From: Takakia lepidozioides
Taxonomy: Eukaryota > Plantae > Bryophyta
Length of the DNA stretch: 64,000 nt
NCBI GenBank assembly: GCA_030704615.1
Contig: CM060731.1
Location: 19,840,001 to 19,904,000, forward strand
Reading direction: 5' to 3'
Shown here: in pieces, positions 15,959-64,000 of the stretch
Layout of the letters: each line of letters opens with the position of its first letter
Position numbering within the stretch: position 1 is the first letter of the stretch
The notes under the pieces: generated by a model
What the model was told of the DNA's origin: nothing
The model's input: the letters and a program-made list of their open reading frames with translations, nothing else
Database searches by the model: none
Made by a program: the position numbers and the translations under genes

Positions 15959-16749
15959 AGCCAACTAATGTGGGATACTAATCTCCCTGGTTGGTTGTGG
16001 AGTAAGATGCAGGCAATAATGTTCTGAATATATATCCCTAGAGCAACTACTTCAGAATCCATATAATATTCCTAAAACCCCACAAGTATGCAACACTTGA
16101 GCCTGACATTCCTACAGCCCTCGTGGACAGCTGAAGACAAAAAACGTTGTGCAAATTTGAGTGTCAAGGACTGGCATTGCCATAATCAGAGGGGAGAGGG
16201 TATCTTTAGTGAAGTCCACCCCCTTGTCCTCTCCATTTTCTGTGTGCCTTATTTACACTTTTGGTTAGGGCTCCTTACTTTGGAATGAGAGAGGGAGAGA
16301 GAGAGGAGAGAGAGGGCCAAAAAAAATAAAAAGGTGGGGGGGGGGGAGTGACTGAGCAGCTGCACTGAACTACAATGTGTTTATAAGTAGTAAACACATT
16401 GCCCTTGATGGGTGGAGACAGATAAAGAAAATAGCACTGTCGTGTCCTAGAAGGCAGAAGCTCATGTTGATATGGACCAGTTATGACTCTTCACACCATG
16501 ACCGTGCTGCATTGAGTTTCTCTACCAGAGTCTCTGCTTTTTTTTTGCTAGTTTCTTTGTCCAACTTGTCCACAATCCTACTAGAGAATGTTCCTTGGGC
16601 GAAAGAAGGGAGAGATACCCTTCCACCATAGCTTTCCCTCCTTTCAATGTAGGCCTATCGCCTCTGAACTGCAGTCTTTGCTCGAGAGACACACACACAA
16701 ACTTTGACCCCTACCACAGTTATTCTTAGGGCATTTGGTTGCTTGGATG

Positions 16750-17137
16750 CCCGGAATTCCCTTTAAAGCTTGCTTAATTATTTTTACAGATTCTTTCATT
16801 TCTCCGATTCGTACCAAATAACGAGCTAATGAATCTCCTTCTTCTTGCCACTGAATCTGCCAATCCGATTCGTCATAACATTCATAATGATCAACTTTAC
16901 GAACATCCCATTGAACTCCCGAAGATCGTAACATGGGTCCAGATAAACCCCAATTTATCGCTTCTTCCCTACCAACAATACCTATTCCCTCTACCCGTTT
17001 GAGAAAAATGGGATTTCGTGTAATAAGTTTCTCATATTCATCAACTTTTGGTAAGAAGTAATCACAGAAATCTAAACATTTGTCTACCCAACCATAAGGT
17101 GAATCTACAGCCACTCCTATGATACGAAAAAAATTAT
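16750..17137 (-). pseudogene. ndhH: Nuclear insertion of plastid DNA (NUPT): internal fragment of ndhH
   Basis: AT-rich segment encoding [48 protein letters not shown]...[30 protein letters not shown]. Both ends are truncated and the flanks are unrelated. Confidence 0.95.
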
Positions 17138-17421
17138 TAAGTGTAATGGTCAAGAGAGATGCTGGTATAACAACCAAGCTGGATGACCTGCTCAGACAAG
17201 AGTGCAAAAAGATCCTCAAGAATTTCCCCCCCTCCAGCCACTCCTATCTTGCTATGAAGAAAGCTACAAAGTTTTGTCCATCAGATAAAATCCTTGGATA
17301 TAGAATCTGACCTCATGTCAAAAACTACCAGTCTTCTTTGCTTGGACTCCTGGAGCCTCAGTGCAGAGAGAGAGCACATGCTCTACACCTTGAAACAGTG
17401 GCCTCATTGCCCATAACCTGG

Positions 17422-21906: not shown

Positions 21907-23022
21907 GACGAATGGCCCAAATGTTCAATATATCTTAAACGTCTTTACGACATTATCACTATAGACGACACTACGTACAGATCAAACACACTTCTCATCA
22001 ACACTGTAAAAAATATGTATAAGTCATACTTGAACCCAAAGTCGATCAATATCTTCCGGTGTTGGGCGGTTACCCGCCGAGACCCAGGTTAACCGCTGGT
22101 AACCGGGCCCATTCCTACCGAACCCGACCCGAAACCGGAACCTGCCAATGGGGATCGGCGCAGATCCGAACCGGCGGTTCGTGCTGGGTGTGAGAGCGTG
22201 AGAACTGGCGCACAGGGATAAAAAAAGGTTCTGGTTCTTGAACCCTTGGTGGGCCTTGGCAACATGGCATAACACTAGAGAGCTGGTGGGCTCAGGGCAA
22301 AACTTCTTTAATGCTCTCAAGCTGGTGAGATCCTGGGTTCAATGCTTGAAGGCCATGAGATTCTATGTTCAATGCTTCAGCGACATGACCTGGGGTTCAA
22401 TCTCTAGCTCCATGATATCCTGGCTAAGTTCATTAATAAAATGTTTGAAGATGCCAATACTTGCCAGGTAGCTGAATAGTACTTTCAACCCATAAAATTT
22501 TACCCATTTTCTTCTACCAGTTTATTTAGAGTATTTTTGTTTGTTTTTTTGTGTTAGTGAAAACTAACAAAATCGTTGGATTTTAGTTTAAATATGTGAA
22601 TACATTGCTATTTAATCTACCGGACTGATAAAAAAAATTAAATCTAATTAAATTAAACAAATATATTTTTAATATAGAACCGGAACCTAACCGGGAACTG
22701 ATGGTTTTTTTATCAGCAACTAACCGGTAACCGGAACCGCCCCCATGTTTAAAAGTTGGATCCGGAACTAGACCGGAACCAGCTCAATAAAAAAAAACCG
22801 GATCCGGATCCGGAACCGTCTCTTGAAATAATTGTGGAACCGGAACCGAAGGTTCCTTCACAAATGCAAGAACCGCCCAACACTGATATCTTCCTTCCAA
22901 AATATAAAGCGCTCATCGACCCATACAAGGACAGGTTTCTTCTGGATGAACTCAAACCGCACCTTGAAGAGTTGCGGTTATCCGGAAAAGACGCTAATAT
23001 ATTCAACGTGAAAAACCCATAA
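21907..23022 (+). pseudogene. FCP1/SCP-like (NIF) domain copy 1, C-terminal half, split by the MITE
   Basis: Removing the MITE and one TSD restores one frame: IYLKRLYDII...SNTLLINT...KSYLNPKSINIF|LPKYKAL...FLLDELKPHLEEL. This parallels the K-L...NTLLIDD...K...NP block of the neighbouring copies. Confidence 0.65.
22057..22885 (-). mobile_element. hAT-type MITE, copy 2 (inverted relative to copy 1)
   Basis: Termini CGGTGTTGGGCGGTT (22057) and AACCGCCCAACACTG (22885). Perfect 8-bp TSD ATATCTTC at 22049-22056 and 22886-22893. Confidence 0.93.
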
Positions 23023-23269: not shown

Positions 23270-23887
23270 GTTTCTCCACTTGCGAAAGGATTGCGTGTGA
23301 TAATTTTTGACCTGAATGGAGTCTTAAAGCACCAGAAGAGCTACAATGTCCCCCGGATGTCCGAGACAAACTACAGGATACCAACTCTTGTTGGATTTCG
23401 ACTTATCTATAGGCGGGAAAAATATCATGAGATGTGGACAGAGTTGAACAAACATTTCCGTCTAAGAATATAGAGTTGCATGATGTACAAGAACTTGTAG
23501 CATCTCCTGGATTTTATGCTTTGGGGTCTTCCTCAGCCGACATTCGTTATGTCTCAAGACGATTGTATCTCCTGTCCTACTTTTGTCCACCCTCAATTTA
23601 TATTAGGATACGACCCACCGAGTCTGTTCTTGAAGCCATTGATGACGGTCTGGCAAAGATTTGGTGGTCAGTACAACATGAGTAACACTCTACTCATTGA
23701 CGATTCTGCTATTAAGTGTGTGTTAAACCCGCCTAAATCCTGTCTGATTCTAAAATCATTTGAATCCGTGGACACGGACTCTTGCTATCTCCAGAAGATT
23801 CTCCTGAAATATTTGCTTGAAATGAAGAAATCTCGCACCGTTTCCAGTTATCTCAGGGAAAAAATGATAGGACTTAAGCCTTATTAG
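23270..23887 (+). pseudogene. FCP1/SCP-like (NIF) HAD-fold domain copy 2, with in-frame stops
   Basis: VIIFDLNGVL...RE...HFRLRI*SC (stop where W is expected)...SQDDC...FLKPL...NTLLIDDSAIKCVLNP. Confidence 0.8.
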
Positions 23888-25699: not shown

Positions 25700-26589
25700 A
25701 TGGTACTTCTTTCACTACACTAGTGGTATATGTTCCTCTAGTCATGTTCATAATCACTTGCACATCACTGTAATAGTGGTATAATTTAAAACAGTGGGAG
25801 TAGCCAAATGCACACAATTGCCTACATTACCAATCGTATAGTGGTATAAGTAGTCACATATATATTACTGTACTAGTGGTATGAATTCCTCCAGTGGTAT
25901 TCCTAATCACTTACACACCACTCTGTTAGTAATCACTCCAATCCATAGTTCCCACTCAGAGAGATACCATGAATGACTCAAATAGCTTACACACCACTCT
26001 GTGGGTAATCATTCCAATGACCTGCTGAGAGACGTCATCCACTCACATAACCACTCTGTGAGTGATATTGTATATTCTCCGTTTTCATAGGATGACTCTA
26101 TGAGTCATTTTGTGATCACTCAACAAGTGGTTTCGGAAGTCATTGAATTTCACTCCATCCATTTCGTAGCACTGAGACACGACACATGTCCATGCTGAGA
26201 GTGTCGCCACGTGTCGACATAATCTCCAATATCATCCACGGACCACCGGCTTACACATCTCCACTACAAAACGGAAGTGGTTACTCTACCACTATGACAT
26301 GTCAGTTTACCACTGTGACACATCATAAGTGGTTGGTTTACCTCAGTGACACGTCATTGACATGTCACAGTGGTTAATTTACCACTGTGACACGTCAGCT
26401 AACAGGTGGACCCGGACGTGAGTGGTTCGAACCACTGTCCTTAACCACTGGTGCCACGTAATGTCTTTTACCACTCACTTATCCTAATCCACTGGTTCTT
26501 CATCACTCTGGGGCCAGAGTGGTTTAATGTCTTTTTCCGCTCAAAATGAGTGGTTAACAGAGTGGTTATTCTGCGTTTTTCTTCTAGTG
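25700..26589 (+). mobile_element. CACTA 3' terminal region
   Basis: Ends ...GCGTTTTTCTTCTAGTG at 26589 (reverse complement CACTAGAAGAAAAACGC). Dense ACCACT/AGTGGT subterminal repeats in both orientations. Confidence 0.85.
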
Positions 26590-26774: not shown

Positions 26775-27420
26775 ACAGCGGGGAAGAGGAAACAGATGTT
26801 GTTAATTTTGAGTGTTAACGGACTCCTCTGCTACCGGCCACCCCCAACTGGCGGTGAATTGTTTAAGGAGAAATTTCGTTTCTGGAATGTGACACTTCAA
26901 ATTCCTGACAGACCTGTGGTGCCTCGGCCTGGAGTCTTGGAGTTTCTGGACCTTGCATTGAAGCATTTTCACGTGGCCATTTGGTCATGCGCTGATAGAG
27001 GTGTTTTTTGTAGGATGTTGGAGAGCTTCGTTCCCACGAAAATAGTGAAGAAGTTTTGTTTCATATGGTCTGTTGAGGATTGCAAGGATACCACCGGTTA
27101 TATGAGGCCCGGGATGAAATATCTCGTGAAGGATATTCGCAGTGTTCTTGCCAAGTACTCTGGTAGACCGTTTGCTACGCAGGGGAAAATACTTCTTGTA
27201 GATGATGAGCCATCAAAGTGCCTGCGAAACCCACATAATACTGGATTCTTCCCTTTCTCATTCAAGCCATCACCAAATGGTTTGCGTGACCGGGATGATA
27301 TGACAAAGGCAGTGTGGCCATATATATCGGAGATGGCTGGAGCTTTAACAGTCGTTGATTACATTAGCGAGAACCGGACAAAGTGTTCTCATAAGCCTAT
27401 TGGTCGAGACCATGCCTGCT
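26775..27420 (+). CDS. FCP1/SCP-like (NIF) domain copy 3: open frame, catalytic motif degenerate, possibly a fragment
   Basis: LLILSVNGLL...PRPGVLEFL...FHVAIWS...FIWSVEDC...KDI...LLVDDEPSKCLRNP. Candidate acceptor CAACAG just upstream. The 3' end runs into PPR-derived sequence near 27513. Confidence 0.7.
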
Positions 27421-27512
27421 GGAGAAATTGCCGCACCAACGTTTTCGGAACTGCCCGAAATGCCCGGATCTTGATCTTCTTGATCTGCGTTTTCCGCCAT
27501 CGTTCACCTTGC

Positions 27513-27840
27513 AAACAGGGGCACGGGATGGAGGCCTGGGGGAAGGGGTGAAGCCCGACCACATCAAATGTCATTCTGGACGCTGCCTTGGTGGACATGT
27601 ATGCGAAATGTGGATGCGATGAGGATGCAAAGGGAGTATTTGACAATATGGCTGAATGAAATGTGGTGTCCTGGAATGCAATGATCGCAGGATATGCCTA
27701 GCATGGTTTGATTCCGTGAGTCAAAATCATGGCCTCGCTCCTACAATGGAGCATTTTGGCTGCATTGTGGATCTTTTTGGCCGTGCAGGTTGAGTGGAGG
27801 TGGCAGAGGACTTCATGAACAAAATGCCAATCGAACCAGC
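27513..27840 (+). pseudogene. PLS-class PPR gene fragments
   Basis: ALVDMYAKCG..DAKGVFDNMAE*NVVSWNAMIAGYA*HG and PTMEHFGCIVDLFGRAG*VEVAEDFMNKMPIEP. Confidence 0.9.
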
Positions 27841-27844
27841 TGCT

Positions 27845-28985
27845 TGGTGGGACAAACGAGGCAAAAAGGTGAATGCTTGCAGATTACCAGATGTCATTCT
27901 GAAGGCTGCAGACACAAGCTGCAGACACAAGAGGTTCTTTAGGGATGAGGAGAAGCTGTGGTATGAATACTTTTCTGACCCCAGTCAATGGAGGGACAAC
28001 CGAGGCAAAAAGGTGAATGATTACCAGATGTCATTCTAAACGTTGCAAACACAAGCTGCACACACAAGAGGTCCTTGTTTTACCCTCTCATCAGACTCGG
28101 CCCTGAGATGCATATTGAACTCTGTTAGTTAGCTCGTTGGGTGGATTTGTGGTGGTTAGGAGTTACTTTGACAAGTTACTGCTGATGTGGCAGCATGAAA
28201 GTATCCAAAAACAGATAACATGGATGAGGAGAAAACACCTTCTTCAACACATTTCACCTTGTTTTCCCATCTTATCAGAATTTGCCCTACATTTCCATGT
28301 TGAATTCTGCAAGTTAGCTGATTGAGTGAACCTTTGGTAGTTTGGAGTGACTTTCACATGATACTGCCAATGTGACATATGAAAGTATCCAAAAACAGGT
28401 AAACAGAGATGAGAAGAAGTTGTGGGATGAATACTTTTCTGACCCCAGCCAATGGTGGGACAAACAAGGCAAAAAGATGAATGCCTACATATTACCAAAT
28501 GTCATTATGAAGGCTTTAGGCACAAGCTATACACACAAGGTCCTTTAGGGTTGATGTTCGGTCAAATCCTCCATGGCTCATGACACAAGGTCAAGGTCAA
28601 TGTGGTGAGGGCACCTTCTTCTTCAACCTATTTCTGCCTGTTTTACCCTCTCATCAGATTCTCCTAAGTGTATATTGAACTCTGTAAGTTAGCTCGTTGG
28701 GTGGATCTATGGTGGTTAGGATTGACTTTGACAAGTTACTGCCGATGTGGTAGCAGGAAAGTATCCAATAACAGATAACATAGATGACGAGAAGGCACCT
28801 TCTTCAACACATTTCACCCTGTTTTCCCCTCTTATCAGAATTTGCCCTAAATTTCCATGTTGAATTCTGCAAGTTAGCTGTGAGTGAACCTTTAATGGTA
28901 GTTTGGAGTGACTTTGACACGATACTGCCAATGTGACACAAGAAAATATCCAAAAACAGATAACATAGATGAGGAGAAGCTCGTT
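27845..28985 (+). pseudogene. Tandem fragments of an OSB-type PDF-motif gene
   Basis: DEEKLWYEYFSDPSQWRDNRGKK|gtgaat (27943-28011), with degenerate copies near 27845 and 28408. A VD.RSNPPW half-motif lies near 28550, and a linker block is repeated four times. Confidence 0.75.
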
Positions 28986-29147
28986 GGTCGCATCATGGTG
29001 TTTTGTAGTGATTTTGATATGTTACTGTAGGTAGGGTTGGGGTGTTTGCTGGAAGAACTTCACGCTGTCAGTCTCAGTTGCTTCAGTTGCTAGCAGCAAG
29101 GCTGAGGTTGTATTCATGGTTTGTACACAGGTGAAGAGAGGCCGTAC

Positions 29148-29855
29148 GCCCAAGTATCCTCGCCTCAGCCCCCTGCCAGGAACAAGCTTCATCATTATAA
29201 GGTCCTCAAGTATCCCCTAACGACAGAGTTTGCCATGAGGAAGATTGTGGACAACAACACGTTGGTGTTCATTGTGGATGCGCGGGCTGACAAGAAGAAG
29301 ATCAAGGATGCAGTGAAGAAGATGTACGAAATCCAGACAAAGAAGGTAAATTTTTTGATAAGGTATGATCTGGATTGCATATGTTGTCGTCCGCTCACAT
29401 AGTATACCGCTCGTTTCTCAAGAGCATACCATTTCTTTGCCTACCAGAATGCTATGCTAACCGTTTCACTCTGAAACAAAATCCACTTGTCATGTAGGGT
29501 TGGAGTAGCCTTGCTTGAGTTACCATCACACACACTCTTATGATGTGGGCGAGAGCCTGAGATTATGATGATTAATTATTTTGAAGATCTTCAGGAACAC
29601 TCAATCGGCTGACAGGATTGCCGTTAGCTGTGTCAAGTTGCAATCTCAAGCTTTGAATGGAACCTCAAGACTGGCTTGGTAGAGCAGGGACTGTTCTCCT
29701 TTGGGTGTTTATTATCTGTATGCTTACCTCTGGGCTTCAAGTACTCATGCTGCAATTTTGTGGAACAGGCCTGATGGACTAGAGAAGGCTTATGTCAGGC
29801 TGCAGAAAGCTGATTATGATGCGTTGGACATGGCAAACAAGATAGGTATCATCTA
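29148..29855 (+). pseudogene. RPL23A: 60S ribosomal protein L23a 3' fragment with intron retained
   Basis: PKYPRLS(frameshift)[56 protein letters not shown]|gtatga...aacag|[23 protein letters not shown]. No 5' exons seen. Confidence 0.9.
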
Positions 29856-29984
29856 GAATGGTTCTTCTTGTTTGGAACTGGGTTGGTTTGAGAGGTGCTT
29901 TGAAAGTTTTGTAGTTGTCCAAAGTGCTTTTCAGTGTCAGCTGCTAGCAGCAAGGCTGAGGATGTATTGATGATTTGTACACAG

Positions 29985-30275
29985 GCAGGGATAGCTGAAG
30001 GACCAGGATAGAGGTCCAGATTCTGCGTGGGTAGATGGTCAACTGGAAACAGCAGCGGCAGCAGCACAATTGATAGAACAAGGCACTGCTATTGAAGGTA
30101 CCTTCTTCAACACATTTCACCCTGTTTTTCCCTGTTATCAGAGTCGCCCCTAAATTGTCATGTTGAATTCTGCTACAAGCTGGCTCGTGTGTGTGCAAGC
30201 CTGGCAGCCCTGGAAAAGTGGACAGAGGTCCATGGTGACATCGTCAAATCTGGAATTGTACCAGATGTCATTCTA
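29985..30275 (+). pseudogene. Further PDF-gene and PPR fragments
   Basis: WVDGQLETAAAA, the linker block, then PPR-like CASLAALEK...VHGDIVKSGIVPDVIL. Confidence 0.75.
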
Positions 30276-31190: not shown

Positions 31191-31289
31191 AGGGACCGAT
31201 ATGTCGATATATGTATCGAGGTCAGTTTGATATACAGCTGATAATATGATATACTACATACTGCATGGGCTGGAATTGTACGAAATCTC

Positions 31290-31350
31290 ACTGCCAAATG
31301 TGGGTGCATGAAGGATGTGAAGGGAGTTTTCAACACTCTGGCTGAAAGAG
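31290..31350 (+). pseudogene. Short PPR fragment
   Basis: AKCGCMKDVKGVFNTLAER. Confidence 0.6.
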
Positions 31351-33122: not shown

Positions 33123-33573
33123 ATTTAAAATGGTGTAGTGTTCAAATCCCCCTCACTTCTTGGGCATAGATAGGGGTATGCCTATGTTATACTTTTGCAT
33201 TGTTCCTCATGTTTTTTGCATAGTATATATTTCCAATTATCAAAAGAATCACTGTATGCGTGGGGATGACCCGCCCCTTTTTGTGCCAATTGAACGTAGT
33301 TCTCAGAAGTTGTCGCTAGTAGTGCGGAGCAACGTGAAGCCCTAGTTAAATACTTAAGAATCCATGTGGCTTACAAGCTGTGGTGGGTAACATGATGGTA
33401 AGGTGATAGTAATGTAGGCAGTGAGGTGTAAGTTTCAATTCCTGATGAGATGCTTTTGTCGTGTAACCCCGGTTGGTGTAAACATATGTAACTCTGGTTA
33501 GTCCATTTTATACTTAGCCAACTTTGGACTTAGTTGAATTTCGAGACCAAGTAAGAGTTACACTCCATTCTAT

Positions 33574-33735
33574 GTAACCACGAGTGGAGTTACACACCTC
33601 GTCGTGTAACCCAATATAACCCCAAGTGGAGTTACATACCTCGTCGTGTAACCCCGTGTAACCCCAAGTGGAGTTACACACGTCGTTCTGTAACCCCGTG
33701 TAACCCCGAGTAACCCCGACTGGAGTTTACACTCC
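33574..33735. repeat. 42-bp tandem minisatellite, about 3.5 copies, internally palindromic
   Basis: GTGGAGTTACA starts at 33584, 33626 and 33668. The first unit has an exact GTTACAC...GTGTAAC palindrome; the others carry single mismatches. Confidence 0.9.
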
Positions 33736-37995: not shown

Positions 37996-40374
37996 CTAAC
38001 TTTGCCAGGTGACAGCAATGGGACTTTGCACTACATGTGTTCCATCCGTCCATGTCAGATACCCAAACACAGTTTCTGAATCACCAGGGAGGAGATCAAC
38101 ATGTTGAGCAGTCACAGCCAGTGTGTAGGTCTGCTTCTCATTCACTGCACCGAAATCCAACGTCGAAGGCTTCACCACCACTGTCACACCCTTGGGAGCT
38201 GCTACGCTGGCAGTGTACCTTGATTTTGCCTGCCCTACATTAGTCACAGTCCTGGTAAAAGTGGTAGACAGTACTGTCGTTTTGGACTGATCCAAGACAG
38301 CCGAAAATGAGGGGTAATTCAAGTCTCCAGGAAGAACTGCCTTCTCGGGACACTTCGGAACCTCATGGGTGAACACCTGTATGGCATTTGCTGAGAAATT
38401 CAACCCACATAGAAAGTTCACGTAGTCTTGGGAAGTCAGATCATAGACCAAACCTGGCTGAACAGCCTTTTCAGGCTGCACTTGACCAGATCCAAAATCA
38501 AAGGGGCTTGAAAAAGTCCCGGTGGCTTCATCTGTCAGAAGTGCATTGTTGTTGCTAATGACAGAGGCAGTAGTCATGAGAGCAGACTTTATTGCACCTG
38601 GGCTCCAGTCTGGATGCGCTGCCTTCAACAAGACTGCAATCCCACTTACATGGGGGCAAGACATGGAAGTCCCAGAGATGATATTAAAACGCACTCTCCT
38701 GCTGTCAAAGGCCAAGCCCGTGGGGCCAGTATGACCAGTCCAAGCTGCCAGAATATTCACCCCTGGCCCGATCACATCTGGCTTCAAGATCTCGGGGAAA
38801 ATTGGGCTTGGTCCCCGTGAAGAGAAGGAGGCAATCACTGGAGCAGGCTTCACATTGAGCGCAGTTCCCCCAAAATGGATGGTAGCTGTGGGATTTTTAG
38901 TAGAAGCAATGTAAGCCTTGATCGCACTGCCTGCTTTGCTACCCACGTCTGTGCCAGGTAGAATGTGGCTGTCTGCTACCACACCCTCCCCGTCAACGTG
39001 GGTATTAGCCATAATCATCCCCGCCCCTCCAGCCAAAAGCACTACGCCCCCCTTCTCCGTTCTGGCATTTACGCCTCGATCACACAAAACTATCTTCCCA
39101 GCAACAAGTTTCGGATTCAGACTGCCCTCCAAGCATTGGCCGGCGCTGGTAGTATTGACTCCGTTAAGGCCTGCCTTTCCGGCGTAGATAAGAGGGAGAC
39201 TACCGTTTCCCAATCCTTTCCCGCTGTAGAGAGACTGCCCAGAGTATGTAGCCCCATTACCTAAAACTGGATCGGCAGGGAAATCTCTGTCCAGCGTACC
39301 AGCTCCTACAGTAAGCTGCCAGGGGGCAATATTGGAGACGGTAAGAGGACCAGGACCCGAGTTCCCTGCAGAGCAAGACACTAAGACGCCGTGCTTGACT
39401 GCCCCAAAAGATGCAATGGATATAATGTCATTGTAGTTGGGTGTGACACCTCCGCCCACAGAGAGAGAAATCACATCAACCCCATCTGCCACAGCCTGAT
39501 CAAAAGCAGCAAGAATATCTGAGTCGAAGCACCCTGGCGTCCAACACACTTTGTACACAGCGAGTCGAGCCTTTGGAGCCATTCCTCGTGCGGTCCCCTC
39601 AGCAAACCCAAACAGGCTTGCACGATAGACATAACGACCAGCAGCTGTGGATGATGTGTGAGTTCCATGCCCTTCGGAGTCTCTTGCAGACTTATACTCC
39701 ACGGTTTCATTTATCGGACCCACTTCGGCCTCATATCCCTTGTAGTAGTAGCGTGCCCCTATCAGCTTTTTGTTGCACATAGAGGCATTGAAGGCAGTCC
39801 CTGGAACACACGTACCTTTCCAGCGCGAGGGAATTGGCCCCATGCGCTGGTCCGAGAAGCTGTGTCGCTCAGGCCACACGCCAGTGTCCAGGAGCCCCAC
39901 AATGACATCCTCTCCATAGTCGCTGTCAGGCCAAAGACCCTTAGACACATTGAGACGCAGAAACTCTGGCGTGTGCGTGGTGTGGAGCTGCTTCACGGTA
40001 TCAGGGTACAAGCCTATCACTCCAGCCATCTTCTCCATTACAGCAGCTTCATCAGCCGTGAGACGCGCAGAAAATCCATGGAAGACCGTGTCATATGTAT
40101 GGAGAAGGCTGTCAGGTCCAATGGCGCTCAACTGGGTCAAAGACTGAACCCCCCCAAACTTCACCGACTGAAGAACAGATGTGTACCACCCAACATGGGT
40201 AGCAAAAATGCTGGGCAATTCACTCTTTGCCATCTGCACAATGTATGTTCTCCCCCTGCTAGAATCAAGCTGTAAGGACCCAGTAAGGCCCCCAACAACA
40301 AGGCAAGCTAGAAAACACGCCCACAATGTGCACCCTGCCATCTCTAATCTTCCCAGCGACTTACGCAAACCCAT
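37996..40374 (-). CDS. Subtilisin-like serine protease (S8, SBT1 clade), intronless
   Basis: Signal peptide, I9 prodomain (TYIV, LHTYDTVFHGFSARL), TTHTPEFL maturation site, catalytic LDTG / GHGTHT / SGTSMSCPHVSG, PA domain and FnIII-like tail. The start may instead be the later Met (MAGCTLW). Confidence 0.96.
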   Translation of the reverse strand: MGLRKSLGRLEMAGCTLWACFLACLVVGGLTGSLQLDSSRGRTYIVQMAKSELPSIFATHVGWYTSVLQSVKFGGVQSLTQLSAIGPDSLLHTYDTVFHGFSARLTADEAAVMEKMAGVIGLYPDTVKQLHTTHTPEFLRLNVSKGLWPDSDYGEDVIVGLLDTGVWPERHSFSDQRMGPIPSRWKGTCVPGTAFNASMCNKKLIGARYYYKGYEAEVGPINETVEYKSARDSEGHGTHTSSTAAGRYVYRASLFGFAEGTARGMAPKARLAVYKVCWTPGCFDSDILAAFDQAVADGVDVISLSVGGGVTPNYNDIISIASFGAVKHGVLVSCSAGNSGPGPLTVSNIAPWQLTVGAGTLDRDFPADPVLGNGATYSGQSLYSGKGLGNGSLPLIYAGKAGLNGVNTTSAGQCLEGSLNPKLVAGKIVLCDRGVNARTEKGGVVLLAGGAGMIMANTHVDGEGVVADSHILPGTDVGSKAGSAIKAYIASTKNPTATIHFGGTALNVKPAPVIASFSSRGPSPIFPEILKPDVIGPGVNILAAWTGHTGPTGLAFDSRRVRFNIISGTSMSCPHVSGIAVLLKAAHPDWSPGAIKSALMTTASVISNNNALLTDEATGTFSSPFDFGSGQVQPEKAVQPGLVYDLTSQDYVNFLCGLNFSANAIQVFTHEVPKCPEKAVLPGDLNYPSFSAVLDQSKTTVLSTTFTRTVTNVGQAKSRYTASVAAPKGVTVVVKPSTLDFGAVNEKQTYTLAVTAQHVDLLPGDSETVFGYLTWTDGTHVVQSPIAVTWQS

Positions 40375-41527
40375 CACTCCCAGATGGAGGCCGAGCTACC
40401 GCCACCAAATCGACAACTCGGGGCCCTACCCCAACAGACGTGCTACCGCTCCTCCACCTCCTGCTAAAGGGGCACAGACCTTCCCAAATGCCCACTCTCT
40501 CTAGGTAATAGGTAAGTCCCTTTTATCTCACAAGCCTCCTCTCTCGCAGGCTTCCCTCGGGACTCTCGACCACCGTCTTTTGCACCGTCTTTCTTCTATC
40601 TATCGAGCTGTCCTCGTCGCTACCGCCCCTATTCTATCATTAGAGCTGTCCACCTTGAGGTCGGAACCCATTTAAGGCGAGCAGATTAGCGATTCAATTA
40701 CCACCGACCAAAGAGAGAAGTCCCTCGTTCTCCACTTCCACAACTGGCAGGGTCGGTGTCACCTTCAATCTACCCAGAGGGAAGTGAGTCAAGCTCCTCT
40801 ACCGATCTGTTATCTCACCTACCTGTGGGTCGTAATAAAAAGTTGAGAACGGTTTACAAGTCAGATTGCACACTACAACTGCTGCGGAACATCCCCCCCC
40901 CCCCCGCTCAGTTGGGTAGGTGGCTTGGGAATGAGAGACGGCCACGAATGGATGTGCGGTGCAGTGCAGTGTGGATGACCCACAGCAGCGCCCTTGCTTA
41001 TCTGCTGCCGATGCTCTCCTATTTATCACAAAAGCATCCCCGTTCCCATCTCCCTATTGATAGTTCCCATTGATCCGTTAGTTTAGCATACCGCGTAGTT
41101 CCTTCCGCTATACTCTCGGTAGACAGCCGGCGATGTAGTCGGCTCATCTCCCGGCTCAGCCGTTTCTATTGCTAGCTGGCAGAATCGGCTCTCCAGCCCC
41201 ATGTCCACTGGGAGCATTCCCCATTGATCAGATACTCATCCAGAGTGCGACAGACTTGATGTGGCCCTCCATTGACCACATTGACCAGTGATGGAGCCTC
41301 AGGCCAAAAAGCGTTCTGATATACTTTTCTTCACTGACACCATCCCCACCTCTTTCAATCTCATGAGACCCGCTCTTCATCCGAGAACGAGGGGGTAAGG
41401 CCGTGGAGTGTGTGATCGGTGTGAAGCGTGTGACTCAGTTCGGCAAATGCGGGGGATGATCCCATAAAAATGGCGGAGAAGGTGACGAGGGTCGTCGTAT
41501 AGGTGCACAGCTGGTCAGCTTTTAGGT

Positions 41528-56082: not shown

Positions 56083-56151
56083 GACGTGGAGAAACTTGGG
56101 ATCGAGTACTTTTCAAACCCCAGTCAGTGGTGGGACAATCGAGGCCATAAG
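56083..56151 (+). pseudogene. Divergent OSB-type PDF half-motif ending at a splice donor
   Basis: DVEKLGIEYFSNPSQWWDNRGHK|gtgtat. Confidence 0.7.
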
Positions 56152-56468
56152 GTGTATATGTCTGTTTTGCAGAAGCAGACTACAAGATGAATTGAAAAAA
56201 ATTGTAGCAAATTAATGCCTGGAGTTCTGATCTTTCTTTGTCAGTTGCATGGGGTCTGCTAAAGTACCCTAATTGTAATTTTTAGCACTACAGAACAACG
56301 AGCAATTCATTACATATTGCAAGGAGCAGAGATCTATTATCTACCTATATCAGGCTGATGAGATTACTATAGGAAACCTTGACATTAGTGTCAACGTTCT
56401 AATATATTCTTGGGCGCACATGACAGACCAATCAGATTCTGGGCTTATGGCCTATTTTTACTTCAGCG

Positions 56469-57500
56469 GTGAGTCGAATTCGAATGCAGACCAAATGTGT
56501 CATAAAAAAAACTCTTGACAAACATCTGAAGCATCAAGAGTCTTGCCGGAGATTTTACCATAGCTTGAGGAATGAATCGGTTATGATGCCAACAAAATTC
56601 TTATGCATCATTCATGATAAGATGGATCATCGAAAGACTGCTCTTCCACGTTTGCAAACAACGAACAAGATGATTTCAGGCTTGGGGCAGTTTCTAGTGT
56701 CTATGGCGGGTATCGTTACTCACGGTCACGGAGATGGCGCGTACGCTCAATATTGGATGGATTTTTGGCCAGCAGATCCCAACTTCGTTATATGATCTTT
56801 GGCTAGAATTTTGCGACAATTGGAGAAACCAACATATCATGAATCAAGAGCCATTTTTGACAACCCCATGCAAACTGATTTATTTGAAGTCATAATGAGA
56901 GGAAAATCCAGGTATTTGGATGTTTTGAAGTCTTGTTCTGAAAATGATAAGAAATGAGCGTTTCCATTACCACGAAGATTGTATCTACAAATTGACAATT
57001 GTGTCAAAGACAACAAGAACACGTGGATATTAGCGTTCTTATCACAAGAGAACAACACCTATGTTCTTTCCGATCTCATGAAAAATTTCATGGTATCTCA
57101 AGACCTACAATTCATTCCACAAATAATTCAAGAAGTTCCAGACTTCAAGGATTTTGTCGACGGCTTTATTTTAGAGGGGAAAGAGGCTTTGGTTGGAGCT
57201 ACGGAAATGCACATTTTTCGGTTTTTTGTTGATTCGGATGGTTGGCCTCTAATGTAATACAAAAAATCTGCAATAGATTCGGATTGGCTTCCAAAAAATA
57301 GCAATGTCAAAATGTGGAAAGCACAAGACGATGTTCTCCAATGCTTCCAGTTGGACAGCCAAAACCGCTCCGTAAAAGACCTATTTTGGGAGATGGTGAC
57401 GAAGCATTAGAGAAACAATCTTGCATCAAGTCCGGTATTAAAAAGTACATGGATTTTTGGAAAAAGTGGACGCTCTTGGATGATCAATATGGAAATATCA
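56469..57500 (+). mobile_element. Decayed Sola/DUF7869-like DDE transposase fragment
   Basis: LCIIHDKMDH.KTALPR...THGHG...DPNF...LPRRLYLQIDNCVKDNKN...AFLS, with stops and an internal deletion. Confidence 0.6.
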
Positions 57501-60430
57501 TGAAATAATTATTCATGCCTGTGAGCGTGGTTGTGTACTCTTCCGTGGGGAGTATGAGAATGTAGACATTTGCCCAGTGTGCCGCAGTTCCCGTTACATT
57601 CCTGGTCGTGGAAGTGTGCCCAAGAAAGTATTGTGACACTTCCCTGTCATTCCAAGGTTGAAACATATGTACCGATGTAAATCGATCACTAACCTCATGA
57701 CATGGCACGACAGACATAAGAGCCAGGATGGGTTGGTTCGACATCCAGCTGATAGCAAAGCATGGAGACACATTGACACCACATTTGAGGATTTTGCTGC
57801 AGAGCCACGATCTCTGCGATTTGGATTGGCCTTAGACGGTGTAAATCCCTACGGAGCTCAATCCACAAGTTGGAGCACATGGCCCGTTCTCTTGGTCAAT
57901 TACAATTTGCCTCCGTGGTTAATGACCAAAAAGTTCTTTGTCATGTTAGCGCTACTGATTCCTGGTAAGGAGTCTGTTACCTCGAACAACGTAGATGTTT
58001 ACCCGATGCCCCTAGTGGAAGAGCTATTAGAACTATGGAGAGGGATTGCAGCTCATGATGTTTCCCGTCCTCGTGGTCAACGCGAATTCACACTGAGGGC
58101 AATGTTGATGTGGTCAATCCATGACTACCCTGCATATGGCTTGCTCTCAAGTCAAGTGACAAAAGGTTATGCTGGTTGTCCAGCTTGTGGACCCGGGGTG
58201 ACTTCACAGCAGTTACACACATGTGGAAAAATTGTTTTCCTAGGCCATCGAAGATTTTTGGCCCGCAATCATCCATATAGAAGGTCAAGAATGTTCAATG
58301 GCGCTACTGAGCATGGAACTCCTCCAAAAACGCAGACTGGAACACAAATCAAGGAGCTTGCAACAGCTCGCACTGCATGGGTGGAAAACGGAGGGACGCC
58401 AGATAGCAGGACAAACCCAGCAAAAACTCATGGAGTTAAGCGATTGTCAATTTTATATGTCTTACCTTATTGGGAGGTAATTCTTTCATGACCTTTAAAT
58501 TGGCTGTGTACATTTTTGCGTTTTCTGTTTAAATTGTGATGAGTAAATGCTCAATAGCTTATGTGTTCATTTTGTAGGGTCTCCTCATCCGCCACACGTT
58601 TGACGCAATGCATTGCGAAAAGAACTTGGCTGAAAATATTATTAAGACTATCTTTGGTGAGAAAGACACATTGAAAGTTCGCCGTGATTTGGAGCTACTT
58701 GGGATGCGCCCGGAATTGTGGCTACAACGTGATCCTGACAGAGCAGATACGTTAATTATGCCTCTTGCCCCTTATGTCCTCACTGAGGCTGAGTTACAAG
58801 TCTTTCTGGAGATTGTGCAGAACTTGAAAGTGCCAACATGCTACGCATCAGCTTTCAAAAAGCATGTGGTGAAGAAGAAGTTGTCTGGCATGAAATCACA
58901 TGACTATCATGTGCTCATGCAGCAAATTATACCGCTTGCTATCCGTGGGCTCATGGCAAGTGGTCCTCGAAGGGCCATTTTGCGAGTATGTCGTGTATTT
59001 AAGAAGTTGTGTGCAAAAGTGGTGAATCTTGTAGAGTATGAGGAATTGAGAACTGAAGCAGTTCTCACTCTGTGTCTTATAGAGAAGGAGTTCCCACCAT
59101 CATTTTTTGATGTGATGACACATCTGGTTGTTCACCTAGTGGATGAGTTGTACTTATGCGGGCTCGTAGCATCTCATTGGATGTACCTCATGGAGCGGGC
59201 AATGAAAAATATGAAGGGCTACGTAAGAAACATGGCAAGGCCCGAGGGGAGCATGGCAGAAGGATACCAATTTGAAGAAGCATTGGGTTTTTGCACAGAG
59301 TATATGGCAGGATTTGATGGAAGTGTACGAAGGGTGTGGGATGCAGATGAGGCAGAATCTGTGGAACGTGAAGTTGTGGAAGGAAGTCCTAAAGCCCGAA
59401 AATTGAATGACCTGTGTGATATTGTACATGAGTACATCATTCAGAACCATCCTCGTCTGTCAGTCATGTTGGGGTAAGAAATCTACTTCATTGACATTCA
59501 GATTTCCAAGTTTTAGTCATTTATCATTAGTTGGCATATGGCGTCTTTTCAAATCTCCCACGCCACCTCTGTCAATCTCTTGGCTGACCCTCGGATTGTG
59601 ACAGGATATATGAAGCAGAGTCCACACGGATAGAAGCCAGACGACGCTTGTTTCGTGAGGAGCAAGGGCTGGAAGGCATGAGCAATCCCACGACAATTCA
59701 GTACCCTCCTGATTTGCATCCTTGTCCTCCATTTGCAGTTTGGCTCCCTCAAGGTGTACGGGATCATCTCTCAATTCAATCAGATGGGCTTGATCCTACA
59801 ACACGTGAGGAATTACTGGATCTTTCAAGGCCTCCATCATTTACTGCCCTGTCATTCAAGAGTATGACAGCGTATGGTAACCATTACAGGGTTACATCCC
59901 CCGACATGAACACAACAAGTATGGTGTCTTTTGATTGTGGAGTCTCATCTGTTTTCCAACACCAACCCATTACCAACAATTCAGGCAATGACATGGAGGA
60001 ACCTACAAGATATGTAGGTCTTATAAGGGAGATTTTGCAAATTGACTATGGCCAAACACAGCCTATAGTGTTTTTGTGTTCGTGGATACGGGCGAGTCGC
60101 GTGGGTCATCAACCTATGTCAATGAAGCAGGATGATGCTGGCTTCACACTTGTCAATTTTAACCGTATGCTTCCACCTTCTGAGCAACCTTTTGTGTTTC
60201 CTGGCCAGGTTGATCAAGTGTTTTTTTCTGATTGTGTGGAGGAGCCGGGGTGGAAAGTCGTCCTGGAGAAGAGCCCCCGAGCACGTAGAGTGGTCTGCGA
60301 CATATCAATTGATAATGATGATGTGGCAGAAGTGGAAGGATTGTTAGCCCAACAAAGACTAGAGGAGACTCTGGTTACTGATGGCCCAACATGCAGCCGA
60401 GCGGGTTACTCCAGAGCGGTTACTCCATGA
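57500..60430 (+). mobile_element. CACTA (En/Spm) Tnp2 transposase pseudogene (Transposase_21 + DUF4218 + DUF4216), 5'-truncated
   Basis: IHAC..GC.LF...CPVC..SRY, KVL*HFP, RHPADSKAW, LALDGVNP, YNLPPW, IHDYPAYG, intron 58477-58577, DAMHCEKN, MKSHDYHV, FPPSFFDVMTHL, WMY.MER, second intron, YVG.I.EI...DY...F.C.W, EQPFVFP.QV.QVFF. Confidence 0.95.
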
Positions 60431-60845
60431 TGCAGTGGCCTCCTTGTACCCAGACATAGATGAGGATGATGAAGATTAGATATGCTAGATTTGTGCACTC
60501 CAGTTATAGACCATGCATGATAGTTTAAGGTGGTAACACTCCCTTCGCATTCCCATTAAGATATCATGCTTGGACACTGGATTTTATGATCAATTATGGA
60601 GTGCTTTCCTTTCAGCACCTTTTATTCATTTGTTGTTGCAATTGGCTTTGGACCAACCCGTGCTGGTACCATTGCCATGGGTTCTGCCTGCAATGTTTTC
60701 TTGCCATGGATTCGGCACACGCCACGAAAGGCCATCCAGACCATCCTCTGGAAATGCTCCAATGTTGTTTCAAACATCTCCACATTGCAATGGATACAAC
60801 ACTGACATTAGATGAGTGAAAGTGAGACTAGACCTCCAGCCAGCC

Positions 60846-60995
60846 GGCTTTCCCACATCAAATTGAAGGGGATCTGTAGATTATAGATAACGGCTGTTGC
60901 CTTCTCAATGTCTTTTCCAATCACCTCTGCAATGAACTGGGGTATAAGATCCTTCAAATCACAAGTTTGAGCATCACGCACAAGCCACTTACGGG
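60846..60995 (-). pseudogene. RPS3A: 40S ribosomal protein S3a fragment, copy 1
   Basis: VRDAQTCDLKDLIPQFIAEVIGKDIEKATAVIYNLQ. Confidence 0.8.
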
Positions 60996-61586
60996 GATAG
61001 AGTTTCCAATGCAAACCATTGGTCTTTTATTGATAGCATTGTTGTAAAATACATGGACCAACAAGGTCAATTTCGGGAATGACATATAGTACGCTTTCAC
61101 GTACTATGTAAGCATGCAACTATGTACCAGTGACGTGGCTTGTTCGCCACTTAACCTGTTTGCCCATTCAGCCATCTCCACATTGTCATGGATTTTGCAT
61201 GCTGGATTGTGAGGGCCATCCACACCGTCCTCTGGAAATGCTATCATGGGGTTTTAGCTATGTCCACATTTCCCTGGATTATGCCTGCACGAAGCAAGGC
61301 CAACTGCATTCAGCACCCTCCACTTTATTATAGTATTGCAGCAACATTCAAAGCACTTCAATTTGTATCCATCGAAAACATCTAGGCTGGAAAAAGACAT
61401 TGTTGCAGCAGAACTTAGGAAAGTACTTCTCCCCTTCCACTACACACGTGAAATGAAAGAAGTCAACCAACAGCATACCAGCCAAGAAAATATGAAACCA
61501 GCCAAGAAAAGAGCCAATATATGCAGTGAAGGTCGACACTAAATGAAACTTATCCAACACTTACATTAGAGGAGGGAAGCTCTTAC

Positions 61587-61700: not shown

Positions 61701-61811
61701 ACTTACAGGGATTGAGCTTCCAATGCGAACCAGAAGTCTTATATTGATAGCATTGTTGTAAAACACATGGACCAACAATGACAGTCTCTGGAATGACATA
61801 TAGTACAGCAT

Positions 61812-62432
61812 GCCGCTTCCAGTTGACCATCTACCCATGTAGGTTTCTTGTAACTATCTTTCCACAGGGAATCATAGGTAATGTGGAGCTTGAAATCCAG
61901 CCCTCTTGGATGAATCTGGACCCACACTCTATCCCTGCTCCTTCAGCTATCCATGCCTCTGACAGCCTACAATTCTACCAGCAAACACCCCAACCATACT
62001 GGTGTGGAGTTCTTCCCCAAAACACCCCAACCCTACTTATCACAATCTGAAATGCATCTGCTTCTCTCTGTAGTCCAACAGGCATTCGCCTTTTTGTCTC
62101 CATTGTCCCACCATTGGGGTCAGAAAGTGTTCACCCCAAAGCTTCTCCTCACCTCTATTATATGTTTTTGGATACTTCCCTGCTGCCACACTGGCAGTAA
62201 CTTGCCAAAGTCACTCCAAACCACCACAGATCTACCCAACGACCTAACTTACAGAATTCAATAGGCATCTTGCGGCCGAGTCTGATGAGAGGGCAACACG
62301 GGCTGAAATAGGTTGAAGAAGAAGGTGCCCTACCACATTGTCCTTAACCTGTCCTGACCCATGGAGGATTTGACCGATGACCTCTTGTGTGTGCTTCTTG
62401 TGTCTGTAGTCAGGTAATGTCGGATTGGTCTG
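61812..62432 (-). pseudogene. OSB-type PDF-motif gene fragment with intron
   Basis: cacag|TNPTLPDYRHKKHTQEV...SNPPW, the linker, a degenerate EEKLW...WWDN, an intron-like stretch, then ccag|IHPRGLDFKLHITYDSLWKDSYKKPTWVDGQLEAA. Confidence 0.75.
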
Positions 62433-62759
62433 TGAGATCGAACCACTAGGGCGTAGCTGAGTAGTCAGAGATTGAAACACGCTTGCTAAGACCAAGCTGA
62501 CTCTCCCAAGAACGGCGAGCTCGCTTCTCCTCGTCTCGTCTCCTTCTCCTCTTCTCCTTCGTGCATCATTTGCTCAACGCCTCCATCCCACGCCCCTGCA
62601 TATCCTGCTATCATCGCATTCCATCCCTCAGCTATGTGGTGTGGCGCAGGAGACAAAAAAACGCCAAGTCCTAGCCCTCCTTTCTGTTCACGATTACACT
62701 AATGGGCAACCTTATTAGCAATTTTTTAACTTTTTAAAACCTAATGGGCAACCTTATTT

Positions 62760-63095
62760 GCATTATATGTGCCTTCAAAATGACACGTGTAGTGATGTAG
62801 TTGTATAAATAGAGCTCTGAAACCATCTTCAGTCATGGAGTCATAAGATTCCATGAAACGTCGTCCACGTGTAGTCAAACATATCACACTAGTCATATAA
62901 ACCATCCCTGTCATCATGGTCAACAATGTTTGACCAATGCTCCCTAACTTTCCGGAGTCATGTAGTGATATCCATTACTACAAAGTCATAAAACTAAAAT
63001 TGTAATGCATTTCAGCGCTCTGTAGTCATCTACCTAGTGCAGTTTTTATGACTCCGCCAAAGCCGTAGTCCTAAAAACGCTCATCTCTTGTAGTG
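62760..63095 (+). mobile_element. CACTA 3' terminal region
   Basis: Ends ...CGCTCATCTCTTGTAGTG at 63095 (reverse complement CACTACAAGAGATGAGCG). Repeated GTAGTG/AGTCAT/ATGACT subterminal motifs. Confidence 0.85.
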
Positions 63096-64000
63096 ACTAT
63101 GGCTGAACGAGATGTGGTGTCGTGGAGTGCGATGCTTGCGGGGTATGCACAGCAGGGGTGCGGGATGGAGGCTCCAACCTATGAGCAAATGATGGGGGAA
63201 GGGGTGAAGCCCGCCGACATAAGATTTGTGTGTGTTTGCAGTGTGTCTGGTAGCCGTGGAAAAGGGCAAAGAGATCCCTGGTGACATGATTAAATCTGCA
63301 ATTGTTCCAGATGTCATCCTGAACACTGCTCTGGTGGCCATGTATGCCAAATATAGTAGCATTGAGGATGCCAAGGGAGTGTTCAAAACTATGGCTGAAT
63401 GAGATGTGGTGTTGTGGACTGTGATGCTTGCAGGGTGTGCAGAGCAGGGGCGCTGGATGAGGCTTTGGAGACCTGAAAGCAAATGATGGGGGAAGGGGTG
63501 AAGTTCATCCACATCATGTTTGTGTGCGTTTGCAGTGCGTGTGCAAGCCTGGCAGCCCTAGAAAAGGGCATCGGAGGTGCATGGTTGCATCACCAAAGCT
63601 GGAAATGTACCAGATGGATTAATAGCTACAAGAAACCTGCATGGGTAGATGGTCAATTAGAAGCCGCAGCAGCAGCGGCACAATGATAAACTCAGGCACT
63701 GGTAATGAAGGCACCTTCTTCAACACATTTCACCCTGTTTTTCCTTCTTGTCAGAATCGGCCCTAAATTTTCATGTTGAATTCTGCAAGTTAGCTGGTTG
63801 AGTGAGCCTTTGATAGTTTGGAGCGACTTTGACATGGTACTGCCAATGTGACAACAGGGAAGTATCCTGGAATAGGTAAGACAAAGAGAAGTTGTGGAAT
63901 GAATACTTTTCTGACCCCAGTCAATGGTGGGACAACCGAGGCAAAAAGGTGAATGCCTGTCAGATTACCAGATGTCATTCTGAACACTGTCTCTGCCCTG
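63096..64000 (+). pseudogene. PLS-class PPR fragments fused to PDF-motif fragments, running off the window end
   Basis: TMAERDVVSWSAMLAGYAQQG, PDVILNTALVAMYAK..IEDAKGVFKTMAE*DVVLW, CSACASLAALEKG, then WINSYKKPAWVDGQLEAAAA, the linker, and EYFSDPSQWWDNRGKK|gtgaat. Confidence 0.85.

Follow-up and report, generated by a model that had tools for sequence, protein, structure and literature searches.

Pack-CACTA elements carry the ends CACTACAA...TTGTAGTG and are flanked by 3-bp target duplications. The capture of gene fragments by CACTA (En/Spm) transposons is already known in flowering plants, as set out by Catoni et al. 2019 (PMC6379663) and, further, by Zabala and Vodkin 2007 (PMC1947982) and Gisby and Catoni 2022 (PMC8903248). 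The PDF motif of OSB proteins comprises about 50 amino acids with the pattern W..F..P..WWDNR..K.NP..PDFKHK..ALW....P.WV (PMC6963530). In the window (the whole 64,000-nt stretch of DNA that was analysed), broken PDF modules and PLS-PPR pieces form a recurring cassette. We consider it somewhat probable that this cassette is a dead, non-coding patchwork of host-gene fragments, which was assembled as Pack-CACTA-like cargo and subsequently underwent local tandem duplication and decay.

The initial annotation described a set of blocks that is repeated at 27.5-30.3 kb (+), 61.8-62.6 kb (-) and 63.1-64.0 kb (+). Self-BLAST and a repeat finder, both applied within the window, reproduced this recurrence, with the minus-strand blocks at 61.8-62.66 kb and identities of 74-94% between the blocks. 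The peptide blocks quoted in that annotation were all present in translation, and its linker, for which at least seven copies had been claimed, was found in seven. The cassette copies are 84-91% alike and all lie within 36 kb. All of them are non-coding, with stops or frameshifts in each, and the only open reading frame of at least 110 amino acids that falls wholly inside a cassette runs antisense (63081-63512).

The WWDNR, PDY and WVDGQL blocks turned out to be true PDF motifs, and their match to the PDF repeats of OSB proteins held in a phmmer search. Among 1.84 billion proteins, the open reading frame 27794-28036 gave 11 matches (best E 2.8e-9), ten of which are long proteins with several PDF-type repeats; the one exception, P0011, is a short fragment whose reading continues into an intron. 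P0002 (E 6.7e-6), a Chenopodium quinoa protein with the SSB domain PF00436, bears the name OSB3. L002, a bryophyte-like OB-fold OSB, showed 76% protein and 84% nucleotide identity over exon a, and the exon-a pattern hit one contig in the metagenome scan, a normal OSB. Pfam lacks a PDF model, and the exon-a and exon-b pieces were each searched singly. An OB fold was not found in the window, and neither was a complete uninterrupted PDF motif of about 50 amino acids, every copy being cut short, shifted in frame or broken by an intervening PPR patch.

The linker of the initial annotation is intron 2 of a multi-module PDF gene. It reads as a phase-1 intron with the reading frame kept, and its donors are mostly GC in place of GT. 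It occurs in two subtypes (alpha, beta), which is compatible with a parent gene having several modules. This first source gene carries several PDF modules, each consisting of exon a, intron 1, exon b and intron 2. The retained introns thus reveal the structure of the parent gene: a phase-0 intron splits the PDF modules after GKK, and homologous phase-1 introns separate them from one another, which is useful for modelling real PDF-PPR genes. A processed pseudogene or retrocopy was ruled out, since intron 1, intron 2 and the intron of a ribosomal protein L23a fragment have all been retained. Apart from the cassettes, we detected a lone, more diverged copy of exon a (EYFSNPSQWWDNRGHK; 56089..56154, +) upstream of a transposase (repeat finder, self-BLAST, tblastn) and an isolated PPR piece (..AKCGCMKDVKGVF..; 31251..31346, +; tblastn).

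The PLS-PPR identity of the remaining pieces was borne out as well. They follow the PLS pattern ..ALEKG..H..I.K.G...D....ALV.MYAKCG...A..VF..M..RDVVSWNAMI.GYA..G with an E1-type end, and the PLS-PPR protein P0028 has six repeats in succession to which the open reading frame 63226-63399 aligns (best E 7e-9). On the cassette reading frames, the Pfam models PPR and PPR_2 stayed below threshold (17 bits vs cut-offs of 25-30), and there were no other Pfam matches. The window contains no intact PPR array, the pieces covering at most two periods and carrying stops, and no DYW piece was found in it. PDF and PPR modules had been regarded as normally residing in separate genes. This is not always the case, since P0028, a hypothetical protein (O6H91_05G032800) of the lycophyte Diphasiastrum complanatum, has a PDF module ahead of its PLS-PPR array.

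The 27.5-30.3 kb copy (+) opens with PLS-PPR pseudogene pieces (27513..27842). They include an E1-type end (MPIEP), are disrupted by stops and by the loss of an internal segment, and are 77% identical to 63308-63449 in self-BLAST. Between a CACTA end and this cassette lies an open reading frame of 251 amino acids (26796..27551, +) with an NLI-interacting-factor-like phosphatase fold (Pfam PF03031, E 1.3e-10), which enters the first PPR piece by a few codons. Short unit 1 (27845..27939) consists of the 3' part of exon a (WWDKRGKK, to 27868), an intron-1 stub (27869-27882), a 27-nt PPR patch (27883-27909) and an exon-b piece (RHK..TQEVL, 27910-27939). Short unit 2 (27944..28076) comprises the full exon a to 28012, the stub GTGAATG (28013-28019), the PPR patch (28020-28046) and the exon-b piece (28047-28076). 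These are followed by long unit 1 (28077..28610), in which intron-2 alpha (28077-28214), a 19-nt mini-exon, intron-2 beta (28234-28398), exon a (28399-28476), a stub, the PPR patch (28491-28517) and an exon b ending in SNPPW (28518-28610) succeed each other. Long unit 2 (28611..29071) is truncated and 89% identical to unit 1; it holds intron-2 alpha (28611-28774), the mini-exon, intron-2 beta (28794-28959), a partial linker and the middle of intron 1 (29028-29071). Inserted in this intron 1 are the last two exons of ribosomal protein L23a together with the intervening intron (29072..29985; one frameshift; Pfam Ribosomal_L23, E 2e-10). The insert is bounded by a 49-nt direct repeat (29083-29131, 29937-29985; repeat D13) and is missing from the 62-kb copy. 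The cassette end (29986..30275) is made up of the 3' end of intron 1, an internally deleted exon b (AWVDGQLE.., to 30093) and the 5' half of intron-2 beta (30094-30175), which is joined to a PPR piece (30177-30275). The local tandem duplication units measure 560 nt.

The 62-kb copy (-) adjoins two tandem fragments of ribosomal protein S3a/eS1 (60811-61026, 61609-61830, -; repeats D4, D12), which match eS1 in PDB sequences with E 3.7e-9 and 4.6e-3. It contains the best-kept PDF module (61805..62157), with exon a at 62090-62157, intron 1 at 61916-62089 and exon b at 61805-61915 (..LDFKLHITYDSLWKDSYKKPTWVDGQLE). The adjacent stretch (62158..62623, -) holds intron-2 alpha (62158-62321), the preceding exon b (TNPTLPDYRHKKHTQEV..SNPPWV, 62325-62432) with a 3' splice site immediately upstream, and a PPR piece (62534-62623). 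The third copy (63098..64000, +) starts with two PPR periods (63098-63616) and continues with the 3' part of exon b (63617-63705), intron-2 beta (63706-63880), exon a (63881-63948), an intron-1 stub (63949-63963) and PPR sequence to the end of the window.

Alignments (A1, A2) confirmed that an aberrant junction is common to four sites (27882/3, 28019/20, 28490/1, 63963/4), as had been claimed. The 17-mer CCAGATGTCATTCTGAA occurs seven times at up to 3 mismatches (0.36 expected). Four of these occurrences are located at the junctions (27887, 28024, 28495, 63968) and three in ordinary PPR context (27564, 30261, 63307). All four junction copies show the same order, in which a stub of 7-15 nt separates the exon end GGCAAAAAG from ATTACCAGATGTCATTCTGAA; the stub begins with GTGAATG, except that the 28.5-kb copy has ATGAATG. 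The GTGAAT does mark the beginning of an intron, which splits the PDF motif after GKK, and in the unrelated contig L001 a GT..AG intron occupies the position of intron 1. In the copy at 62090 (-), which is free of the junction, the exon runs on into the intact intron. Judging from the sequence, the transition from exon and intron stub to PPR is an aberrant join at the DNA level. Since it is common to four copies, it arose once and was copied afterwards. Hence, that part of the initial annotation which held that the chimera formed once is supported, and for its amplification as a mobile unit the support is circumstantial. Of the four junction copies, three are products of local tandem duplication, and only 36 kb separates them from the fourth. 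PDF parts and PPR parts meet in at least five different aberrant joins that can be read from the sequence, and short shared bases are readable at the junctions that were examined most closely. A search with the junction pattern gave no match in the metagenome scan, which is uninformative on copies in this genome.

Two different CACTA ends were identified near the cassettes. A 5' terminus (CACTACAAAAC) is located at 26262..26580 (+), where ACCACTG / AGTGGTT motifs form a dense subterminal field; the interior of the element extends to the right. Thirteen of the subterminal motifs fall in 26001-26500, with no cluster elsewhere in the window, and the 27.5-kb copy begins 1.25 kb inside this end. 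A 3' subterminal region with its terminus (..CTTGTAGTG) was found at 62789..63095 (+); here, GTAGT[CG]N occurs six times in 300 nt (62789-63090) vs 0.44 per kb in the window, and this unique cluster ends with TAGTG at 63095. Upstream of it, three open reading frames (57658..60430, +) encode a CACTA transposase of the TNP2 type (Transposase_21, PF02992, E 1.6e-73; DUF4218, E 1.3e-32; DUF4216, E 1e-06) and are oriented like the 3' end. The space between transposase and 3' end (60.8-62.62 kb) is filled by the two S3a fragments, PDF modules and a PPR piece. The shared junction is borne by the 63.1-64.0 kb copy, which is located beyond the 63095 end, and is lacking in the copy inside the element. 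The 5' and 3' ends have different subterminal motifs and represent different families, and in self-BLAST the two loci have only the genic blocks in common and no transposon backbone. The flanks are CTC (26259-26261) and ACT (63096-63098), and neither end has a paired partner in the window; for the 63095 end, a 16-mer with 3 mismatches, short-word BLAST and motif clusters were used in this search. No cassette in the window is enclosed by a two-ended element with a 3-bp target duplication. Several further candidate ends were rejected: CACTACAAGA at 37427 has no adjoining subterminal repeat field; CACTACAG at 56285 has no repeat field and mismatched flanks; TTTTGTAGTG at 29010, considered as right end for the 26262 terminus, is a diverged linker stretch, and at 30908 it has neither repeat field nor matching flank.

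The 62-kb copy lies inside a CACTA element and the 27.5-kb copy just inside the 5' end of another family, and together these positions make Pack-CACTA-like cargo the most likely form in which the patchwork was assembled and dispersed. Its fragments stem from the multi-module PDF gene, a PLS-class PPR array and the ribosomal protein genes L23a and S3a. These pieces appear to have been joined at the DNA level with their introns kept, mostly through motifs or introns, as expected from template switching or end joining in double-strand-break repair. At least the 62-kb copy is cargo inside a CACTA (En/Spm) transposon, and later enlargement of the patchwork probably proceeded by local tandem duplication in 560-nt units, followed by decay. 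The patchwork has no protein function, and any effect would be exerted via transposon silencing. Contrary to the initial suggestion, the carrier is not an undescribed repeat family: the context is that of ordinary CACTA elements, whose gene capture is known; somewhat probably, the cassette is a further case of this Pack-CACTA-like kind.

The support for a mobile unit is circumstantial, and old local duplication alone could explain copies of 84-91% identity within 36 kb. The cassette may descend from a local cluster of real PDF-PPR fusion genes, which was tandemly duplicated and decayed in place. Unequal crossing-over, deletions and subsequent insertions of transposons would have scrambled it, and no transposon would ever have moved it. 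The existence of fusion proteins such as P0028 and the lack of a complete Pack element in the window are consistent with this scenario, and the CACTA end at 63095 cuts into a PPR motif (cf. 63367-63400), as would an insertion into an existing pseudogene. The left flank of that insertion, with the other half of the cut motif, is absent from the window. However, a native colinear transition from PDF to PPR is also lacking, every contact being an aberrant join through a motif or intron. Moreover, two unrelated ribosomal protein genes have contributed interleaved fragments, one of these with its intron, and one copy is situated between a transposase and its terminus. We consider decay of a local gene cluster possible but unlikely.

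Helitrons and Pack-MULEs also make multi-gene mosaics with introns kept, and a Helitron or a Mutator-like Pack-MULE might have captured the fragments, with the CACTA elements as mere neighbours. Nine nucleotides (TACCAGATG) are repeated on either side of the 63617-63965 segment, and 9 nt is the size of a Mutator target duplication. However, this segment has no terminal inverted repeats, and the repeat is equally well explained if both joins used the same PPR codons. Since the scanned reading frames yielded only the TNP2-type CACTA transposase and neither a Helitron helicase nor a MULE transposase, capture by another element appears quite improbable. A live locus that encodes a PDF-PPR hybrid protein or a regulated non-coding RNA giving rise to small RNAs against PPR genes is highly improbable, for although splice-site-like boundaries survive in some copies and the 62-kb (-) and 63.7-64.0 kb (+) copies are mutually inverted (I9, I10), every frame has stops and frameshifts, the intron-2 donors are mostly GC and not GT, and the inverted arms measure only 47-54 nt at 85%, the linkers being 74% alike.

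For annotation, the patchwork loci should be masked as transposon-associated pseudogene debris, since unmasked they would inflate PPR and OSB-like gene counts and suggest false chimeric proteins. If the pattern holds genome-wide, a plant outside the flowering plants would offer a clear case of Pack-CACTA capture, with RNA-editing-factor genes at its centre. A far-reaching version, which we regard as improbable, is that this seed-free plant harbours a CACTA family specialised in PDF-exon and PLS-PPR cargo, which is spread genome-wide and either feeds small RNAs that dampen PDF-PPR editing-factor genes or supplies material for new module combinations. If true, DNA transposons would drive the growth of the PPR family in early land plants beside retroposition.

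Compared with OSB proteins, the exon-a and exon-b blocks of the cassette match the same PDF motif, but there the motif stands beside an SSB domain, whereas here every module is broken and sits with PPR pieces. P0028 combines the same two module types, and exon a, exon b and the PPR pieces of the cassette each align to it. In this protein, however, a single intact PDF module is followed colinearly by the PPR array, whereas in the cassette nothing is intact and PDF and PPR meet only at aberrant joins. Pack-CACTA and Tgm-Express-type elements (PMC6379663, PMC1947982, PMC8903248) likewise hold fragments of several unrelated host genes, with introns kept, inside or beside CACTA termini, and the surroundings of the cassettes include CACTACAA termini, fields of subterminal repeats and a TNP2 transposase. 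Unlike these elements, the window shows no complete two-ended element with target duplication, the host is a seed-free plant, and the cargo is mainly of one gene type (PDF plus PLS-PPR), which then underwent heavy internal tandem duplication.

A self-BLAST, in which 27.0-30.6 kb was compared with the whole window, and a repeat finder confirmed that the same blocks recur at 27.5-30.3 kb (+), 61.8-62.66 kb (-) and 63.1-64.0 kb (+), with identities of 74-94%. In addition, both methods detected a lone, more diverged block at 56089-56154, and tblastn a small PPR piece at 31251-31346. Since Pfam holds no model of the PDF motif, we used an ORF of the window (27794-28036, 81 aa), the longest stop-free frame spanning two WWDNR blocks, as phmmer query against 1.84 billion representative proteins. 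PDF and PPR pieces were each searched singly, by reference, and the exons were kept unjoined. Here, we found 11 matching proteins, ten of which are long and carry several PDF-type repeats (best E 2.8e-9). They include a protein named OSB3 of Chenopodium quinoa (P0002), which has an SSB domain (PF00436). The eleventh match, a 106-aa fragment (P0011), is a read-through into an intron. The JGI contig Ga0181514_1388218, obtained when metagenomes were scanned with a degenerate exon pattern, codes for a normal OSB with an OB fold, and the DNA of the only PDF motif in this protein shares 84% identity with 63886-63949. Because of these matches, the WWDNR, PDY and WVDGQL blocks are PDF motifs, as the initial annotation had read them, and the failure of an HMM match, which it had named as a ground for rejection, did not occur. 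The PPR pieces aligned to six successive PLS repeats of a Diphasiastrum complanatum protein (P0028; best E 7e-9), and their Pfam PPR matches were below threshold only. With this, fragment identity is established in the window. The OSB of the metagenome contig lies on the minus strand, is complete and bryophyte-like and consists of an OB fold and one PDF motif.

On the contig encoding P0011, an intron of about 270 nt with GT..AG borders interrupts the PDF motif behind ..WWDNRGKK; the motif continues with.NP..PDFKHKTTNEALWVDSYKTPEWV, whereas it is intronless on Ga0181514_1388218. At 62 kb, the minus strand preserves this split layout, with exon a (62090-62157) followed by intron 1 (61916-62089) and exon b (61805-61915), and thus the GTGAAT at the PDF exon end is a true intron start. 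The supposed linker block, present as seven copies, is the next intron, intron 2 (about 165 nt); taken as a phase-1 intron, it brings ..GTAIE and DNMDEEKLW.. together in frame. Subtype alpha (28077, 28611 and 62158-62321 on the minus strand; 84-88% alike) comes after an exon b ending ..SNPPWV, and subtype beta (28234, 28794, 30094 and 63706; 81-94% alike) after one ending ..WVDGQLEAAAAAAQ; the two subtypes are 72-78% alike. Hence, the parent gene contained two or three PDF modules at the least, separated by homologous introns.

A search with OSB3 returned P0028 (939 aa), in which a PLS-PPR array and E motifs come after one N-terminal PDF module. This protein aligns with each of exon a, exon b and the PPR pieces of the window. 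Thus, PDF and PPR motifs are not always located in separate genes, although this had been assumed to be the normal case. In the literature, we found no paper connecting PPR proteins with the PDF motif. The window contains no surviving native PDF-to-PPR transition, and for this reason the cassette could derive from a PDF-PPR gene or, as the less simple alternative, from joint capture of an OSB gene and a PPR gene.

The shared junction is established at four sites in the window (27882/3, 28019/20, 28490/1, 63963/4). At each of them, ATTACCAGATGTCATTCTGAA comes after exon a and the initial 7-15 nt of intron 1; it is the stretch that encodes ..(I/V)PDVIL.. in the PPR repeats at 27564, 30261 and 63307. 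After 63964 the PPR reading continues to the window end; in the three copies at 27.9-28.5 kb the PPR patch comprises 27 nt only and exon b then resumes (RHK..TQEVL). In the minus-strand copy at 62090, exon a passes into normal intron 1, and since a similar short stretch (GGACTACAGAG) stands there at the crossover point, the junction looks microhomology-mediated. An aberrant join common to these copies indicates one origin followed by copying, as had been proposed, but three of the four are tandem units at one locus (28076-28419 and 28639-28979 are 89% identical), and only 36 kb separate the fourth from them. Further aberrant joins were read from the sequence: near 27842 the PPR E1 motif MPIEPAA runs into WWDKRGKK, near 27940 exon b meets the beginning of exon a, near 30176 the middle of intron-2 beta is joined to PPR ..CASLAALEK, and at 63616/7 PPR ..GNVPD is joined to (L)WINSYKKPAWVDGQL. 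There is also a 19-nt mini-exon between successive introns. The same 9 nt (TACCAGATG) stand on both sides of segment 63617-63965, and the PPR motif would read through if this segment were removed. The inverted arms of the 62-kb and 63.9-kb copies extend over about 50 nt only (85%, repeat finder).

The DNA is plant nuclear (G+C 38-52%), and its genes resemble those of a seed-free land plant. An intact, intronless subtilase (minus strand, 37999-40341 or, in wider limits, 37996-40377) has I9 inhibitor, S8, PA and fn3_6 domains; in a protein collection search its closest proteins were 63-64% identical and lycophyte and bryophyte proteins about 60-63%. An ORF at 16644-17216 (-) strongly matches the 49-kDa subunit of respiratory complex I (nad7 type, Pfam E 1.2e-51) and represents either inserted mitochondrial DNA or a copy, in the nucleus, of a gene that is usually mitochondrial. 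The ORF at 9089-9769 (+), which has the aspartyl protease domains TAXi_N and TAXi_C (E 4e-26), is probably one exon of a gene for a nepenthesin-like protease. An inverted repeat of about 750 nt (1444-2197 and 22101-22887; 94-97% identical, arms 20 kb apart) could form the long terminal inverted repeats of one large element, or else have arisen by inverted segmental duplication. At 33573-33711, a 42-nt unit rich in GTAACCCC is repeated in tandem in three and a bit copies.

A TNP2-type CACTA transposase was found at 57658-60430 (+; Transposase_21 E 1.6e-73, DUF4218, DUF4216). Upstream of it, two ORFs (56469-57254, +), one with a DUF7869 match (E 1.7e-8) and the other with a ..DKMDHRKTALP.. motif, look like pieces of another transposase-like gene. 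A GTAGT[CG]N cluster at 62789-63095, unique in the window (6 in 300 nt vs 0.44 per kb), ends with ..CTTGTAGTG; its reverse complement begins with CACTACAAGA, like the En/Spm terminus. Two tandem fragments of ribosomal protein S3a/eS1, the 62-kb PDF modules, which they directly adjoin, and a PPR piece fill the interval from the transposase to this end. This layout is that of captured cargo, and one cassette copy sits inside a transposase-bearing CACTA element. The 63.1-64.0 kb cassette starts 3 nt outside the 63095 end, which cuts a PPR motif (63367-63400 compared with 63096-63120). A second CACTA end at 26262 (CACTACAAAAC) opens a dense subterminal repeat field unlike that at 63095, followed to the right by an open NIF-like phosphatase ORF and the 27.5-kb cassette. 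This NIF/FCP1-like phosphatase-fold ORF (26796-27551, +; 251 aa) lies just within the CACTA 5' end and may be a transposon-borne or captured gene. A second NIF/FCP1-like copy (23450-23887), only 24% identical, is located 3 kb upstream, beyond the 26262 end.

In the main rival explanation, real PDF-PPR genes formed a local cluster, decayed where they stood and were struck by transposons. In self-BLAST, the 27.5-kb and 62-kb loci have only genic blocks in common and no transposon backbone, and neither a partner end nor a target duplication of the 26262 or 63095 terminus was found in the window. On the other side stand the cargo between the transposase and the 63095 end and the foreign gene pieces. 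At 29072-29985, the last two exons of ribosomal protein L23a and the intron between them (Pfam E 2e-10), bounded by a 49-nt direct repeat (repeat finder, D13), lie inside intron 1 of a PDF module; this fragment is absent from the 62-kb copy. All introns are retained, and therefore the patchwork does not result from retroposition. The best-supported reading is a Pack-CACTA-like patchwork: we infer that error-prone repair of breaks within and near CACTA elements acquired gene fragments and stitched them together, and that tandem duplication and decay followed. That the cassette controls PPR genes through small RNAs, which the initial annotation had also raised, is possible but unsupported. For flowering plants it is established that CACTA elements capture gene fragments (PMC6379663, PMC1947982, PMC8903248), and thus the Takakia patchwork belongs to a known kind.
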